Assembly (NCBI GenBank): GCA_965603825.1
Contig: CBFDEM010000051.1
Span: 310,001 to 374,000 of the forward strand
Direction of reading: 5' to 3'
Origin: Blepharisma stoltei ATCC 30299
Lineage: Eukaryota; Protista; Ciliophora
Length of the DNA stretch: 64,000 bases
In this document: positions 11,584-18,033 of the stretch, one piece after another
Position numbering within the stretch: the first letter of the stretch is position 1
How the letters are laid out: every line of letters begins with the position of its first letter
Notes under the pieces: model-generated
Told to the model about the DNA's origin: nothing
What the model saw: the letters and a program-made list of their open reading frames with translations, nothing else
Databases searched by the model: none
Position numbers and translations under genes: made by a program

Positions 11584-12465
11584 TTAACTCATGCTGGCTT
11601 CCACTGTTTTAGCCAAAAACAAGGTCTGTCCAACCTTAAATAATAATCCATCATGAATCTCAAAGAAATCTTCAGCAAAAAGCCAGGTTCCGTTGGTCGA
11701 TCCTTTAACCCCATTTCCATCTTCAAGTATCCACCCAACCTGATCTTGAAACTTCAAAATAAGCTGGTATCTCGACAGACTTGAGTCATTGAACACTACT
11801 TTGCAGTCTTGAATTCGGCCAATTTGAATATCCGAGTCATCCGGGGTAAACGACAAAACTTCATCAGCTTTCGGCCCCTCTAAAAATTTCAAAGAAATAT
11901 CAGAATTAGCAGAATTCAACTGCACAAGCATATGTGATTCCCCAAACGACACAACGTTTCCATTTTTAAGCGAAAAAGGCTTCGTTATTTTTACAAATGT
12001 CCCAGTTCCTTCTCCCAGGTCTTTTAAAAAATACTTTTTTTTCTGGACATCATATCTGACCACCATATGATTGTTTTCTGAAGCTTCGGAGTCGTGAATG
12101 ACTATATCGCTTTTTTCAGAGGAATTCCCAAAATAGACCAGGCCATCCTTAGGTGTTCTTGTGGATCCTTCGTAACCACCTGGATTAATCCTATACTCTG
12201 TGTTCTTTGGGAGAGAGTTTCCTTCAACGATTATAAACTTCATTTTCGGCCCAGTCAGAATTTCGTTTTCAGAGATAAGTGACCCTGAAGACAGCAAACT
12301 TTGCTCTTGCCGCTGCCCTGAATTTTCAAGTGGTAAGGCGATAAAATTTGAAGAAGGCTTTGTTTGATGGGACTCAGGAGGTAAAGGTTCTTGCTGGTTT
12401 TCGTCAGGATACTGGCAGCAGCACTGTCTAGAAAATACAGAGAGGAACAATTTGAAATTCACCAT
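11584..12465 (-). CDS. Double FHA-domain protein
   Basis: YFLKDLGEGTGTF and IGRIQDC...SSLSRYQ...DGNGVKGSTNGTW FHA motifs. Confidence 0.85.
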   Translation of the reverse strand: MVNFKLFLSVFSRQCCCQYPDENQQEPLPPESHQTKPSSNFIALPLENSGQRQEQSLLSSGSLISENEILTGPKMKFIIVEGNSLPKNTEYRINPGGYEGSTRTPKDGLVYFGNSSEKSDIVIHDSEASENNHMVVRYDVQKKKYFLKDLGEGTGTFVKITKPFSLKNGNVVSFGESHMLVQLNSANSDISLKFLEGPKADEVLSFTPDDSDIQIGRIQDCKVVFNDSSLSRYQLILKFQDQVGWILEDGNGVKGSTNGTWLFAEDFFEIHDGLLFKVGQTLFLAKTVEASMS

Positions 12466-12546
12466 TATTGAAATATTTTTTCAATATTTTAACAGTTTTT
12501 AATAAAAAACCGAGAAAAGACATGGACTATTTTTAATACCATTTAA

Positions 12547-14748
12547 TTAAGATAGCATTGTATCTAGCATTCACGGATCAGCTATTTGATGAGCGATGTC
12601 TCCTCCATTTTGAGAGTTTTGTCTAAAAGAAATGGAGTTGGCTTTTCTTCTTTCGCTGCTTTCCCTCGCTTGCTCTTTTTCCCATCTCTTTTTCCTTTCA
12701 TAGTTCATCATAAGCTGGTCCCACACTGTTTTATTTACAACCCCATTTACCAGCATCCCTGCTTCTTCTTGGAACCTCTTCACCAGTGCTTCTGTCTTCT
12801 TGCCAAAAATCCCGTCTGCCTTATGTCTAGTCCCTAGTGAGCTGTTTAAAGCCATTTGTACAAGTTTTATGTCTTCAGGGTCGTTATCTTGTTTTGCCCT
12901 TGAAATATTATTTTTGAAGGGTGGGATTTGTATAAGCTGCCTTTCATTCATTTCGTTCATCAAGCTTTTCATATGTTCTCTGTGTTGTGAATCTTTGGCT
13001 TGGATTTCGATAGGGGATGTGTTGCCGCTAGAAAATGAAGGACTTGGGATTCCATATGATTTGAAGTCTCTGACGATATTTTCAAAGCTGCTGTTACGAG
13101 AGCCCATTCCAGAACTTATAGGAGTGTAAACTGTCGAGTCCTCGTTGCAGTGATCAATCTTTTCGCGGATAACTTGAGCAATCTTAGGTATAAAGGAAGG
13201 ACGAAGGTTAAAGGTAGAAGCCATTTCTTCTGCTACGCCTTCTGGGGTGTCTGTGTTAAGGTTGAATACGAAATCCAGCCTAATGCGGTTGATTTTTCCA
13301 GTAACTGCGTCTTTGCTTCCGATGTTAATTGATAAGGTCATTTCTGTTTCTTGGGGGTCTTGAGGGAGATTTTCAATTTTTGATAAGTTGATGAAGTCTG
13401 TTGGAGGTATGCTTCTCCTATCATCTCTGCTGCTCGCCCTACTTAAAGCGGCTGGTGTCTCTTTTTCTTTTGTTGGTTCTCTGCTATTAGCTCTGCTTAA
13501 ATTAGCAGGTGGCGGATCTCTTTCTTTTATAGGCTCTTTGCTGCCTGCTCGGCTCAAGGTCGGTGTTTCTTTTATAGGCTCTTTGCTGCCTGCTTTGCTT
13601 AAGGTTGCTGGTGCTTCTTTTAGAGCAGAAGGAGGTTCAGTAGCCCTCTGTTCGACTGCACGTGGAGGAGGGTTTTTAACTTCTTCTTTTTCATTGTTTA
13701 TTATAGGCTTTTGACTAGGCTGAGATGGAGGAGACTCTGCTTTTATTTCTTCGCTTTCTTTATCATGAATAATTGGTGTGTCTATTTCTATACTTTTCTG
13801 AGTAGAAAGTTCTTCAGGTCTAAGCTGTATAGGCTGATGAACTCTATCATCATTTTCATCAATCACAATAAATGGATGTGCTAATAACTCCTCTGCGTAC
13901 GGTCGTTGATCAACAGGAGCTAAGCATAATTCAATGAATTCCTTGACTTCTTTATCCATGATTCTTTCAAGTACCAATGGCTTAATCCCGTTAGTGACTT
14001 TTCTATAAACTTCTACTGGGGTTTTGCATTCAGAATAAGGTATTGAGTGCGTGCACATTTCTAATAAACATAGACCAAATGAATAAATATCCACCGTTGG
14101 CCCATATCTTTCTTCAAACAACTCAGGGGCCATATATTGAGGAGTCCCTAAGACAGTCTTATTATGAGAAGTCCTCATAAATGTCGACAACCCCAAATCT
14201 CCAATTCTGATATCCCCAGTACTAGAGCTCACAAAAATATTATCACATTTTAGATCTCTATGTATGACTGGGTATGGTTTTTGAGTATGCAAATAATGTA
14301 AACCGTTTAAAATGTCTCTGCATCACTGCTTAATAACTCTTAAATGCGGTGACCTGATTTTTTTCAAGTATTGCTTCAAAGAGCCTCCTGTCATGATTTC
14401 AGTAATAAATATGACTTCTTCTCTTTCTTTATTGTGTCATGCCTTAATGAAATGGATGATGTTTGGATGCATCAATTTTTGAATCATCATTATTTCGTCG
14501 CGGACTTTTTCTTTTTCGATTTTGCTCATGCCTCCTGTTTTAACCACGTTTCATGCAACTTCGCAGCCTGTGTCATTATCAATGGCTCGATAAACAGTTT
14601 TGTATGCACCACTGCCAATTTCTTCATTGAACTACTTAAGGGTTACTCTTGAAAATCGGCCTTTAGGAGAGTCCTCTACTATTTTGTAGCCTACTTCTTT
14701 AATCTTATTGACCTCTTCTTCGTTTTCGCCTTCTTCTTGGTCTTTCAT
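12547..14748 (-). CDS. WNK: WNK-family Ser/Thr kinase with CCT-like domain and C-terminal peptidoglycan-binding-like domain
   Basis: SPKGRFSR|FNEEIGSGAYKTVYRAIDNDTGCEVAW(TGA)N places the catalytic Lys in subdomain I (WNK signature). IHRDLKCDNIF, IGDLGL, GTPQYMAPE. Intron 14632-14646; TGAs at 14551, 14437, 14323, 12571; TAA 12547-12549. Confidence 0.92.
13423..13608 (-). repeat. Four degenerate coding tandem repeats (LS[KR]A[GNS]S[KR][ED]) inside the WNK gene
   Basis: tttcttttataggctctttgctgcctgct recurs at 13521 and 13566 (45-nt period), with two more diverged copies. Confidence 0.8.
14632..14646 (-). other. 15-nt intron gtaacccttaagtag
   Basis: Removal joins GRFSR to FNEEIGSG, as in WNK kinases. 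Confidence 0.88.
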
Positions 14749-14986
14749 CTTTAAGATTATTATTAACTTTAATAAATTTAATGAATTATTTTATTTATCA
14801 TTTTCAACTCTTCTAAACTTCTAGAATATTTAGAAAATAGAGAAATTAATTAGGCATTTTGCTTATTTAGCATTTTATTAAAAACTGATTAGAAATAACA
14901 GCAAATTAATCAAGTAAAAAAAAACTTATTTTAAAATAATTTACAAAAATAAAAAGCAAAAAATTTTAAAATCTTACAGATATCAA

Positions 14987-16183
14987 TTAGCATTTCTTTT
15001 TTTTTCTTAGTGAATTTGCAATTCCTTCAAGAGCTCTCTTGGTTGTCCTTTTTGATTTTTCTCCACCTTGAAGAATTGCAGCTCCAAACTTTGGAGTGGA
15101 GTTTGGTATTTGAGGAATAGGAAGTGGACCTTCTTTGCCTTGCAGTGCTTTTGAAGTTAAGTATTGGTGCAGTCCTCCATCAATCATATAAGGAGTGTAT
15201 AGGCTACTTAAAAATTTTGACTTGACGAATCCAACTAAGCTTGACTGATGCTCAATAATATTTATATTTGGAAAAATTATTGGGGAAACTTGCTCTTGTG
15301 TTATTACTTTTTTTACCAAAAATGAAGAGGGTGTATCATGTCCAGGGAACAATGCATAATAGCAAGGTAAAAATGACATACATTGTGTATCAATATCAAA
15401 AATCGAGCTGCAAATAAAAGCTAAATCTTCGTTTCTTAAATATTCACACAACCCTGCTAGCTCTCCAGAAACAGAAGAGATAATTCATGAAGATCCGTAT
15501 ATGTACGCCAAGCTTATTGTTTCAGCATAAACAATATTTTCCGCGAAAAATTCGATATTTTGCACTTCAATAGCTTTATTCGTTAAAATATGCTGAGGTG
15601 ATAACTGAATTGGGATTTCATAATTTTCTTGATCTCCTTCTTGTGATAGAACAAAATTTCCTCGGTAAATTGTTAGAGCAAAAGTATTGAGAATATTTCT
15701 GAATAAATTCTTAATTTCAATTGGAGAATTCATAATACAATTGAAACCATCCACTTTATCTTCACCAATTTTAAAGAGCTTTACTCTAGACTCAAGCTGG
15801 TAATTGAGCCATTTCTCTAGGGAGTTGCAAATACAAAATATTAAACAATCCTGCTCAGCCATCATTAAGTGTTTTATGCACACTCTGACAGCACTCAGAG
15901 TTGAAATGTCATCAATCATAGGCTCTTCTCATAGTTTGTAGTCATTGATAAGAGGAATGTAAACTGAGGGGAGTGGCGGGCGATCTTTTGCAACAAAGAT
16001 ACACTATGTTATGATTACTTTATAGCAATCAGAATGAATCGCATAAACAGATATGCTGGTTAAACCTTTAAGGTGCATATAGTTGAGCAGCTCAATTAAA
16101 TTGAGCTTTCTGAGTAGATTTTACAAATGGGTAATAAGATTGGAGTCTCTATAAAAGATATCAAAAACGATATAAATGTACAT
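14987..16183 (-). CDS. Uncharacterised protein, possibly M1AP (meiosis 1 arrest protein)-like
   Basis: Continuous frame from ATG 16183 using introns 16110-16124 and 16004-16018 and two TGA=Trp codons. C-terminal LCEYLRNEDLAFI...YYALFP...SFLVKKVITQEQVSP resembles the M1AP C-terminal pattern (by eye only). Confidence 0.6.
16004..16018 (-). other. 15-nt intron gtaatcataacatag
   Basis: GT..AG with A10; removes an in-frame TAG. Confidence 0.7.
16110..16124 (-). other. 15-nt intron gtaaaatctactcag
   Basis: GT..AG with A10; removes an in-frame TAA. Confidence 0.7.
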
Positions 16184-16484: not shown

Positions 16485-17285
16485 CTAAAATTTAAAGTTT
16501 ATACTTGGGGACTCCTCCACAAGATCTTCAATCATGTCCCCAGAAATATCATTCCCTTCCAAACTTAACGTCTTAATATGTTGCAGCTTCTGAATGCTAT
16601 CTAAAAAGCACTTTCCTCCTGCATCTCCAATAGCATTCTGTGACAAAAATATTGTCTGCAAATTTGGCATAGTTACAAATGCAGCTATCAAGAATTTGAT
16701 CCCATCTGGCCCAATCTCATTTTCAGTAAGACTGATTGTATTGAGCTTCAGCAGTTTTGGAAGATCTTTTCCTAAAATTTCTGCCCCTCGAGGTCCGAGT
16801 CCGTTGATGTGAAGTTCTAACGTTTGCAAAGATTCAAGCTTGGCAAAAGCTGTGCATAGGTATTGAATTCCTTCAGGGCCTAGGTTGTTATCGGCTAAAG
16901 ATAAATACCTCAGTTTACTTAAAGTTTGAATTGGCTTTGCAAGATCTTTAATTCCTTCAACCCCCAATCTCGCCTTCCACAAATTAAGGCTGTTAAGGTT
17001 TACAAAAGAAGGCAAAATATTAGCTAAATGCGAATGATTGGCACACAGGTCAATAAATTTTAAATCAATAGTAAAAATTTGTTGATCTTCGTGTGCGAAA
17101 ACTGCCTCATATAAAGTTTTAATTTTTCGGTTCATTCCTTGCTGGGCTATAAAGTAGGATTGAAGGTCTGATAATTCGGTATTGTTAGCAGATATAAATG
17201 TTATTCTTTCATGAGAGTCTGGCACTTTTGGGCTTGGCTTTACACTTTGTGAGCGTCCTTTACTAGCTCCGCAAACACTTCCCAT
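16485..17285 (-). CDS. Leucine-rich repeat protein (RNI-like) with N-myristoylation/palmitoylation-type motif
   Basis: About 28-aa LRRs (LxxLxLxxNxLGxxG). Probable start MGSVCG at 17285. Ends TAG. Confidence 0.85.
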   Translation of the reverse strand: MGSVCGASKGRSQSVKPSPKVPDSHERITFISANNTELSDLQSYFIAQQGMNRKIKTLYEAVFAHEDQQIFTIDLKFIDLCANHSHLANILPSFVNLNSLNLWKARLGVEGIKDLAKPIQTLSKLRYLSLADNNLGPEGIQYLCTAFAKLESLQTLELHINGLGPRGAEILGKDLPKLLKLNTISLTENEIGPDGIKFLIAAFVTMPNLQTIFLSQNAIGDAGGKCFLDSIQKLQHIKTLSLEGNDISGDMIEDLVEESPSINFKF

Positions 17286-18033
17286 TGTTTTATTATGTAA
17301 GCAATTAAAATAAATAGGATTAATGGATACTGAATAAAAAACTTTTAAAAAGTGCATGTTTTTATTTTGATGGATATGTTCCATTTTAAACGCTGTTATT
17401 ACTGATAATCTCTATTGCTGCATTAGGACTTAGGATTAAAGTTGCTTATTTTAGTCATTGAATAGCAATGAGGATTTCATGAGTCTTAATGAGGACCCCA
17501 AGCCCATTGGCTGTATGGAAGAGTATTGCTATATGAAATGTTGTAGATCAGGAAACTGCTACAAAATCCATCCCCACGGAAGCATTTCAAAGTTGATTTT
17601 ATACAAAGCTAAATTCTTATTGATTTTTTTATCATTGCTGTAGCAAGTATAATTCTTTTATCTATTCAGAAATTGCTCATATTTGCACACAGTAATTGCA
17701 TTGAATTATTGGTCTTTTGATAATAATCAACTGAATTGCAAAATTTTGTATTAAAAATTCATTAATTAATAGATTTCTATTACCCGTCTAGCATTAATAA
17801 GATATCATTACAGTTTAAGATATAAAAGGAGCGTCTTATATTTGAAATATAATTCCTTTAGTTTTTAATTAATATGCAAATAAATTAAAGCTTTTTATCC
17901 AATTGCATTTTATTTGTAATGAATTCCCAATTGATTATATTAAATTAGCAAATTTATAAAAATGAATTATTTTAATTTGAGGTTACGGCAGCTGAAATTG
18001 GTTGAGAAATTATTTGCGTCATCCTATTAAATA

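Follow-up and report, generated by a model that had tools for sequence, protein, structure and literature searches.

The window analysed here, 64,000 nucleotides of a contig of Blepharisma stoltei ATCC 30299, carries on its minus strand a gene of the WNK kinase family, WNK4_7 (Table 1). Its reading frame starts with an ATG at position 14748 and ends with a TAA at positions 12547-12549, which are the limits given by an earlier note on this DNA. Four TGA codons, specifying residues 61, 99, 137 and 721, are read as tryptophan, and a 15-nt intron contains an in-frame TAG at its end (14632-14634). The introns of B. stoltei are 15-16 bp long (PMC9942806). The earlier note had placed the kinase, the linker, the CCT-like domain and the peptidoglycan-binding domain in one frame; the order stands, but the frame is not uninterrupted, as it contains the four TGA codons and the intron with its TAG. 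In the searches, the frame was used either as stop-free pieces or as the database protein P0121 (CAG9330329.1). For the trees and for the identity check against P0121, the Blepharisma loci were translated in their own code, with TGA as tryptophan. The spliced translation of WNK4_7 obtained in this way is identical to P0121.

Table 1. Coordinates of WNK4_7 and its parts in the window, in the direction of transcription
Feature	Positions	Strand	Remarks
Whole gene WNK4_7 (CAG9330329.1)	12547..14748	-	CDS with stop; 728 aa when spliced, TGA = Trp
15-nt spliceosomal intron (GTAACCCTTAAGTAG)	14632..14646	-	absent from contigs of RNA runs X1, X2 and X3
WNK-type protein kinase domain	13867..14628	-	residues 36-289; Pkinase E 3.8e-56
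Low-complexity linker	13423..13602	-	residues 378-437; four LS[RK]A[GNS]S[KR][ED] repeats at 378, 393, 412 and 430
CCT-like domain (WNK CCTL1 / OSR1_C-type)	13153..13305	-	residues 477-527; aligns with WNK3 5O2C residues 318-369
Full conserved C-terminal module	12679..12921	-	residues 605-685; P-F-x-G lead-in, three-helix domain, start of charged helix
PG_binding_1 (PF01471) core	12712..12882	-	residues 618-674, 57 codons
Charged C-terminal tail	12550..12678	-	residues 686-728; includes TGA=Trp721 (12571-12573)

The kinase and the C-terminal domain are parts of a single transcript, as had been presumed. One 2160-nt transcript contig (run X1) covers positions 12564-14738 with the intron removed and with zero mismatches. 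The transcript contigs extend to position 12529 on the 3' side, and the upstream spacer of the gene is covered by none of them. A Blepharisma japonicum MMETSP transcript (P0122) likewise spans the protein from the kinase through the PG_binding_1 domain. WNK4_7 is a genuine gene of B. stoltei that is expressed and encodes a soluble kinase of the WNK family. Its product is already public under an automatic annotation.

The protein begins with the kinase, followed by the repeat linker, the CCT-like domain and a peptidoglycan-binding-type domain (residues 620-674), the third helix of which continues into the charged tail in the AF2 model. The lack of a signal peptide, claimed earlier, agrees with the composition of the N-terminus, which is hydrophilic (mean hydropathy -1.5) and has no hydrophobic stretch. 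No membrane segment is found in the protein, the largest Kyte-Doolittle mean over 19 residues being 1.02. By these measures WNK4_7 looks cytosolic.

The kinase aligns end to end with the structures of WNK3 and WNK1. All of the 15 best PDB sequences are WNK3 or WNK1 (E 7e-94 to 9e-83), and PAK, the next kinase family, follows at 1e-37; among the matches listed, the named homologues are mostly plant WNKs. With animal and plant WNKs (human WNK1 and WNK3, plant WNK8 and WNK10) the protein shares the catalytic lysine in the glycine loop (GSGAYK45TVY), a substitution at the position of the beta3 lysine, which is Asn62 here (EVAWN62VV vs EVAWCEL in WNK3), and a CCT-like domain after the kinase. OSR1_C (PF12202) scores 17.8 bits on WNK4_7, below the cut-off of 22.4, and passes the cut-off in the Climacostomum ortholog (31 bits) and in paralogs. 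When the genome was scanned with PF12202, WNK genes alone were matched and a separate OSR1/SPAK-type gene was not found. RFx[V/I] motifs dock CCT domains of the SPAK/OSR1 type and are typical of animal WNKs without strictly defining them. WNK4_7 differs from animal WNKs in that it has no RFx[VI] motif, which is absent from its eight paralogs as well. Taken together, the sequence features identify the kinase as a true WNK with a CCT-like domain. What further sets the protein apart from the animal and plant enzymes is its C-terminus, as PG_binding_1 occurs in none of the named WNKs among the matches listed.

The assignment of the C-terminal core to PG_binding_1, made in the earlier note, is confirmed. 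The codons read as written there, and PF01471 matches the isolated core over profile positions 3-57 of 57 with an E-value of 3.5e-12 and a score of 46.7 bits; in the full context the score is 40.5 bits, and the Pfam gathering cut-off is 23 bits. The match is far beyond chance. A phmmer search of PDB sequences with the core returned only proteins with peptidoglycan-binding domains, the phage endolysin 7RUM being the best (E 2.3e-5). In the AF2 model of the domain (pLDDT 91.3), three helices span model residues 14-28, 40-53 and 63-80, and Foldseek ranks 1-24 against the PDB are all taken by proteins of bacteria or phages that carry such a domain (TMq 0.60-0.81, rmsd 0.8-4.4 A), so that the structure check proposed along with the assignment gave the same answer. 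Among these structures, the model is matched best by the C-terminal domain of CtpB from Bacillus subtilis (TMq 0.80). Matrix metalloproteinase (MMP) prodomains, in which the fold is used for protein contact, match the model weakly, with TM of at most 0.51 and a probability of 0.2-0.3. Descent from an MMP prodomain was rejected on these weak scores and on the finding that the genome has no PF01471 gene other than the WNK genes. The model comparisons support a domain of the bacterial/phage type, not of the MMP-prodomain type.

The resemblance to bacterial and phage PG_binding_1 domains (phiKZ gp144, SleB, SleC, SltB2/SltB3, LysT84 endolysin and DD-peptidase 1LBU) extends from the three-helix fold (TMq 0.6-0.8, 23-33% identity) to the above-cut-off profile match, an intact first DGxxGxxTxxxPho repeat and a conserved FQ. 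The second repeat, by contrast, is degenerate in WNK4_7, and the domain is joined, without a signal peptide, to a eukaryotic cytosolic kinase, whereas the bacterial and phage wall enzymes are secreted. The extracytoplasmic setting is missing from WNK4_7, in which the domain is combined with a kinase and a CCT-like domain and not with domains that act on walls.

The five PF01471 matches in the 41.5-Mb B. stoltei genome lie on five contigs, all of them within WNK reading frames. The genome contains nine WNK-like genes, five with PG_binding_1 and four without it. A profile of the family matches residues 605-685 of WNK4_7 at E 1.6e-35, as well as four paralogs. The earlier suggestion to look for the WNK-PF01471 architecture elsewhere proved fruitful: it is present in B. 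japonicum, Climacostomum virens, Fabrea salina and many metagenome contigs of uncultured relatives, and the collection came to about 29 proteins that combine the kinase with the domain. A profile built from the halves after the kinase contributed only four such proteins, along with bacterial proteins containing the domain; its matches included no named ciliate from outside the heterotrichs, which is a result that cannot show absence. Rather than an isolated case, the fusion is a family: besides the five paralogs of this genome, orthologs were found in at least three other named species of heterotrichs. Among heterotrich ciliates it is both old and conserved, and a 40-nt intron in contig L007 hints that it may also occur beyond the heterotrichs, which would place the capture deeper. 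As the earlier note supposed, it also appears to be undescribed. No description of a WNK joined to a peptidoglycan-binding domain was found in the literature searched, and a preprint on the Stentor kinome reports 10 WNKs and does not mention such a domain.

The WNK4_7 proteins of B. stoltei and B. japonicum differ in 20 residues, 16 of which fall within residues 306-444 and none after residue 493; the region of the repeat linker is the fastest-evolving part of the protein. The base differences listed for the domain either affect third positions or exchange one Leu codon for another. This pattern indicates that the PG_binding_1 domain is under strong purifying selection. The same pattern argues against the view that the domain is an artefact or a relic, whether it came from a chimeric assembly, from contamination by bacteria or from a gene model that reads through, or is in decay and has no function. 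The sole support for this view is the general rarity of the domain in eukaryotic cytosolic proteins. It is opposed by the single spliced contig that spans the gene, by the Blepharisma-type TGA=Trp codon downstream of a domain that lies in the frame of the kinase, by the paralogs on five contigs and by the orthologs in three other named species. On the spliced contig and the downstream TGA codon, chimera and contamination were rejected, and the view as a whole is highly improbable.

A tree of the WNK domains and 61 others, of the kind that had been proposed earlier, needs two label changes, vs 24.6 with shuffled labels. The tree in which the WNK domains are held together has a log-likelihood 39.7 above that of the free-search tree, with a p-AU of 0.886. 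All WNK copies of the domain are compatible with one origin. A tree of the kinase domains, made by a quick method, is poorly resolved, with two intended outgroups inside the ciliate set; it is used only for its starred grouping, in which P0010, a protein that bears the domain, sits together with the paralogs on C18 and C2, which lack it.

The DGxxGxxTxxxPho motif has been linked to ligand recognition, and its presence in two copies suits a ligand of repeating structure (PMC12547810). In WNK4_7, repeat 1 (DGIFGKKTEALV, residues 640-651) is intact, reading D640-G-I-F-G644-K-K-T647-E-A-L-V651. Across the WNK family its key positions are kept to different degrees (D/N in 93%, the first G in 86%, the second G in 48% and T in 76%). 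Repeat 2 (NGVVNKTVWDQL, residues 663-674) is degenerate, N663-G-V-V-N667-K-T-V670 (NGVVNKTV), and across the family its Gly is replaced by T, N or S and its Thr by L or V in about 70% of the copies. The Thr of repeat 2, the equivalent of ExeA Thr503, is kept in 85% of the non-WNK comparison domains, which were drawn from the matches to a WNK-derived profile. In the clade of P0032-P0035 repeat 1 is lost too (NETYDSET, NDDYDKEA), and the domain is still kept. The WNK4_7 copy retains nearly all consensus positions of PF01471, including F654, the equivalent of ExeA Phe487, and N617, A628, E648 and K652 are conserved specifically within the family. Conservation cannot tell the keeping of the fold from the keeping of a ligand, because most conserved positions of this small fold are structural.

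Bacterial Ser/Thr kinases with PASTA domains (PknB, PrkC) and animal NOD1/NOD2 are proteins in which a module that binds wall fragments controls a signalling domain. By analogy with them, the domain of WNK4_7 might bind peptidoglycan or muropeptides derived from food vacuoles or intracellular bacteria and might thereby change the activity, localisation or clustering of the kinase, which would couple feeding or infection to the control of ions and volume. The canonical bacterial/phage type of the domain, the intact first motif with F654, the full conservation between the two Blepharisma species and the retention of the domain in five paralogs of a bacterivorous ciliate, in whose genome it is found nowhere else, are all consistent with such a sensor. 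The degenerate second repeat is compatible with it as well. A second repeat that is degenerate is likewise seen in the domain of SltB2, for which the authors state that peptidoglycan binding has been shown experimentally (PMC12547810); because SltB2 is described as a binder, decay of the motif does not exclude binding. The decay in SltB2 is milder than that in the WNK family. Against a sensor stands that the second motif is degenerate throughout the family and that the P0032-P0035 clade has lost the two motifs while retaining the domain. Moreover, the solved relatives include a copy that is used purely for dimerisation, and four WNK paralogs manage without the domain. Lacking both a secretion signal and a membrane segment, the protein would as a sensor meet only those wall fragments that reach the cytosol. 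On this evidence we regard sensing as unlikely, though far from negligible. The analogy with PASTA kinases and NOD1/NOD2 is one of function, as their PASTA and LRR folds are not homologous to the domain of WNK4_7. The PASTA kinases, besides, sit in the membrane and expose their sensor on the outside of the cell. That the heterotrich WNK family consists of cytosolic receptors for bacterial wall fragments, in which the captured domain binds muropeptides and switches WNK signalling, as a counterpart of NOD and PASTA proteins that arose independently, appears doubtful.

The sequence evidence leans towards co-option of the domain rather than peptidoglycan sensing, because the family as a whole has a degenerate second repeat, one clade has degenerate forms of both repeats, and the fold is matched best by the dimerisation domain of CtpB. 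The authors who studied CtpB describe its C-terminal domain as a motif for dimerisation that is similar to a peptidoglycan-binding domain "despite distinct function", and they note the likeness to a domain of gp144 and to the propeptide of pro-MMP-2 (PMC3808539). With CtpB there is a precedent for a use of this fold that does not involve peptidoglycan. CtpB differs in being a secreted bacterial protease, and for the WNK domain dimerisation is only a proposal. The absence of a signal peptide, a membrane segment and an RFx[VI] motif from WNK4_7 and the family-specific polar residues (N617, E648 and K652) also count for co-option, and the intact first repeat, F654 and the near-full PF01471 consensus of the WNK4_7 copy count against it. 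We consider it on balance probable that WNK4_7 is an expressed WNK whose domain was captured once and now serves as a partner-binding or dimerising C-terminal module. A piece of a gene coding for the domain would have been taken up once by a WNK gene, no later than in the common ancestor of the named heterotrichs, and would since have been retained as a C-terminal regulatory module; that the donor was a bacterium or a phage, and the direction of the transfer, we infer. The fold, no longer a cell-wall anchor, might gather WNK molecules or dock them on a target, and would then replace the oligomerising and RFxV-docking elements used by other WNKs.

The conservation of the domain while its classical motifs drift could also reflect a different ligand. 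The fold might bind another polymer or structure of the ciliate, such as a cortical, cyst-wall or vacuolar glycan, and place the kinase there. Confinement of the domain to one kinase family in this genome would agree with such targeting, as would the suitability of a double motif for a repeating ligand (PMC12547810). The idea is pure inference, however, and a cytosolic location is predicted for the protein while wall-like polymers lie outside the cell; we hold it to be improbable.

WNK kinases have been investigated for their sensing of chloride, cell volume and crowding, and to our knowledge the known WNK accessory domains all serve protein docking. The present family is a conserved, multi-paralog branch of WNKs that has long carried a wall-binding fold of bacterial or phage type. 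If the module was re-used for protein contacts, as we favour, it would be a clean natural case of a transferred prokaryotic domain with a new role in eukaryotic signalling, to be placed beside the MMP prodomain and CtpB, and it might reveal how the WNKs of ciliates come together in the absence of the elements known for animal WNKs. If it still binds muropeptides, a single-celled predator would possess a detector of bacteria coupled to a kinase, and the sensing of cell walls in the cytosol would have been invented independently. Gene knock-down by feeding of dsRNA has reportedly been used in Stentor.

Among the ESM Atlas clusters of at least 50 members, no large cluster combines a kinase with PG_binding_1. 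A homologue search with the domain region returned its own cluster and one paralog-like match, and is uninformative on the wider distribution because its word index is too coarse for a domain of 100 residues. The searches of the ESM Atlas agree with both domain identities, kinase and PG_binding_1. A profile search of protein representatives with the domain was dominated by proteins that carry 5-16 tandem copies of it, and these served as a comparison set.

The C-terminal domain of WNK4_7 (CAG9330329.1), the WNK kinase of the window, matches PF01471 PG_binding_1 over profile positions 3-57 of 57 and clears the cut-off of 23 bits with a score of 46.7 bits (E 3.5e-12). A PDB sequence search with the domain found only PG-binding-domain proteins, the best of which was the phage endolysin 7RUM (E 2.3e-5), followed by 5TV7, phiKZ gp144, CtpB, SleB and 1LBU. 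The AlphaFold2 model of residues 606-686, calculated with 12 family members, consists of three helices and has a mean pLDDT of 91.3. Compared with the PDB by Foldseek, the model has PG-binding-domain proteins of bacteria or phages at every rank from 1 to 24 (TMq 0.60-0.81, probability 0.99-1.00); owing to the small size of the domain, all matches fall short of E 0.001. Among eukaryotes the fold is best known from the prodomains of MMP-2 and MMP-9, which score far lower against the model (TM 0.35-0.51, probability 0.1-0.3). The domain is therefore bacterial-type, as the earlier note had called it. Divergent WNK copies are under-detected by Pfam: the precomputed Pfam list of P0024, a WNK (MMETSP cluster mate P0331), lacks PF01471, yet the family profile scores its domain at 75 bits, so that Pfam-only architecture counts are too low.

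The reading frame contains one TAG and four TGA codons, the TAG being located at the end of a short intron. With this intron removed and TGA read as tryptophan, 728 of 728 residues are identical to CAG9330329.1, and the gene is thus already in public databases, by automatic annotation. Introns of 15-16 bp, the reassignment of UGA to tryptophan and 64 telomere-to-telomere contigs were reported for the B. stoltei ATCC 30299 macronuclear genome (PMC9942806); the assembly searched here has 64 contigs and 41.46 Mb. The last TGA (residue 721) precedes the TAA by 8 codons and is predicted to be read as tryptophan. In the close paralog on contig C56, the stop lies one codon past the matching place (…IAEPC-stop vs …IADP-TGA-MLDTMLS-TAA in WNK4_7). 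The transcript contigs leave TGA721 compatible with tryptophan or with the end of translation.

Coordinates of the WNK4_7 gene, its neighbours and related loci (window positions unless a contig or residues are named)
Feature	Position	Strand	Remark
WNK4_7 frame	12547-14748	-
Intron	14632-14646	-	15 nt, GT...AG
Pkinase domain	residues 36-289	-	Pfam E 3.8e-56
Linker repeats	13423-13602, residues 378-437	-	four spaced LS[RK]A[GNS]S[KR][ED] units, also given with trailing P
PG-binding-type domain	12712-12882	-	57 codons
Last TGA	12571-12573	-
FHA protein gene	11587-12465	-	two FHA domains, PF00498, E 2.4e-19
Leucine-rich-repeat protein gene	16488-17384	-	LRR_6, E 5.7e-15
Short frames	14990-15451, 15488-15919		between LRR and WNK genes
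PF01471-bearing WNK loci	contigs C51, C56, C60, C5, C21		six-frame PF01471 scan
Domain-less WNK paralogs	C18:98800-101900, C2:314900-318000, C57:234800-237600, C36:969300-971900		L009-L012
Two-CCT subfamily gene	L006:3001-4746
L007 intron region	L007:2060-2110		40 nt, GTAAGT...TTTAG

Four sequencing runs of one study contain about 80% of the words sampled from the gene. A single 2160-letter contig from run X1 covers 12564-14738 with no mismatch and with exactly the 15 intron letters absent, and the same letters are absent from contigs of X2 and X3. The removal of the intron shows that the contigs, which give neither expression level nor exact transcript ends, are RNA-derived, though the kind of the runs is only guessed. 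The contigs extend to 12529 on the 3' side, and none from the compared runs covers the upstream spacer, 14757-15000. Contigs of run X5 (2015), from a second organism, also cover the domain and differ there in about 5% of the bases. The X1 contig and the B. japonicum MMETSP transcript P0122 both span the kinase through the PG-binding-type domain, which disposes of the possibility, raised in the earlier note, that transcripts end before the domain.

The fusion is a family and not a one-off. The six-frame PF01471 scan of the whole genome found five places, all in WNK-type reading frames, one of them WNK4_7 on C51, the contig from which the window (310001-374000) is taken; a family-derived profile found the same five loci and none further. 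The genome contains nine WNK-like genes (E below 1e-30); the remaining four stop directly after the CCT-like domain. About 29 proteins with the kinase and the domain were collected from elsewhere, in protein sets that are word-indexed or without organism names. The named sources, B. japonicum, Climacostomum virens (P0020) and Fabrea salina (cluster of P0012), are all heterotrichs. In two metagenome contigs, L006 and L008, a 15-nt intron interrupts the same codon as in WNK4_7; the L006 gene ends at TGA and so combines tiny introns with the standard code, a pairing known from reports on Stentor. At this codon the metagenome contig L007 (P0057; GC 45%) has a 40-nt intron, suggesting that its source organism is probably without the tiny-intron habit, not a tiny-intron heterotrich, and that the fusion may range wider than the named species. 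The L006 gene and P0032-P0035 form a subfamily from a standard-code, tiny-intron organism; its members carry a pair of CCT-like domains, and the two DGxxGxxT motifs of their PG-binding-type domain have both degenerated.

In a tree of 29 WNK and 61 other domains (68 columns), the WNK label changes 2 times versus 24.6 times with shuffled labels (a value as low as 2 was reached in 0 of 500 shuffles), and when the WNK domains are constrained to stay together the log-likelihood is 39.7 above that of the free-search tree (p-AU 0.886). Both results fit a single capture of the domain, which 68 columns cannot prove. In the kinase tree, otherwise poorly resolved, the domain-less C18 and C2 paralogs group with the domain-bearing metagenome protein P0010 (support 100), which suggests a later loss of the domain in that branch. 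B. stoltei and B. japonicum differ at 20 of 535 aligned residues, 16 of them in the linker (306-444) and none beyond residue 493; the listed base differences within the domain are in third codon positions, except one synonymous CTG/TTG change.

The kinase belongs to the WNK type: the best 15 matches in the PDB sequence search are WNK3 or WNK1 (E 7e-94 to 9e-83), with PAK next at 1e-37. The WNK hallmark, Lys45 in the glycine loop (GSGAYKTVY), is present, and Asn62 occupies the beta3 position (EVAWNVV vs WNK3 EVAWCEL), which is lysine in other kinases. The CCT-like 1 domain of the WNK3 structure 5O2C aligns with residues 477-527; PF12202 stays below its cut-off in WNK4_7 but passes it in paralogs and in the ortholog from Climacostomum. 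The linker repeats (LSKAGSKE, LSRAGSKE, LSRANSRE and LSRASSRD) look like R-x-x-S basophilic phosphorylation sites and are embedded in the fastest-evolving stretch of the protein. A sequence scan found neither a hydrophobic N-terminus nor a membrane segment, and WNK4_7 is most probably a soluble protein of the cytosol. An RFx[VI] motif is absent from WNK4_7 and from its eight paralogs. The OSR1_C/CCT profile matched WNK genes only in the whole genome, with no separate OSR1/SPAK-type CCT kinase seen; this usual downstream partner of WNK may be missing from B. stoltei or too divergent for detection.

Ligand recognition in the PG-binding family is tied to two DGxxGxxTxxxPho repeats, and Phe487 and Thr503 of ExeA are named as critical residues (PMC12547810). 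WNK4_7 has an intact first repeat (DGIFGKKTEALV) and, as F654, the equivalent of Phe487. Its second repeat has degenerated (NGVVNKTVWDQL), with Val in place of Thr503. In most of the 29 WNK copies T/N/S stands for the second-repeat Gly, and in about 70% of them L/V stands for the Thr; of 1138 instances of the domain outside the WNK set, picked by a WNK-derived profile and without organism labels, 85% have Thr. N617, A628 and E648 are conserved in the WNK set only. Members of the P0032-P0035 clade have lost the first repeat as well (NETYDSET, NDDYDKEA), yet they retain the domain and Pfam still recognises it; if the family has one common function, the classical motifs would be dispensable for it. 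The best fold match to the model is the C-terminal domain of CtpB. Its authors regard it as a dimerisation motif and liken it to a peptidoglycan-binding domain "despite distinct function" (PMC3808539). The motif decay and the CtpB match, with the absence of RFx[VI] and the lack of any OSR1/SPAK-type match in the genome scan, tip the balance slightly towards a co-opted partner-binding or dimerising module. Muropeptide sensing is a less probable but live rival, since the local copy is nearly canonical, which counts against co-option, and since the domain of SltB2, whose second repeat is also decayed, has according to its authors been shown to bind peptidoglycan (PMC12547810).

The earlier note knew of no described fusion of this kind, and the searched literature agrees: no paper of the library has WNK and "peptidoglycan binding domain" together, and those with WNK and peptidoglycan among the matches listed are reviews or gene lists that do not concern a fusion of this sort. 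A Stentor kinome preprint counts 10 WNKs with the domain unmentioned, and the combined architecture is missing from the ESM Atlas clusters listed (searched at 50 or more members). The parts are known; their combination appears undescribed.

The two short frames upstream of the WNK gene have no Pfam match and are followed by a leucine-rich-repeat protein gene. On the other side lies a gene for a protein with FHA domains, the transcript contigs of which have a word depth much above that of the WNK contigs.
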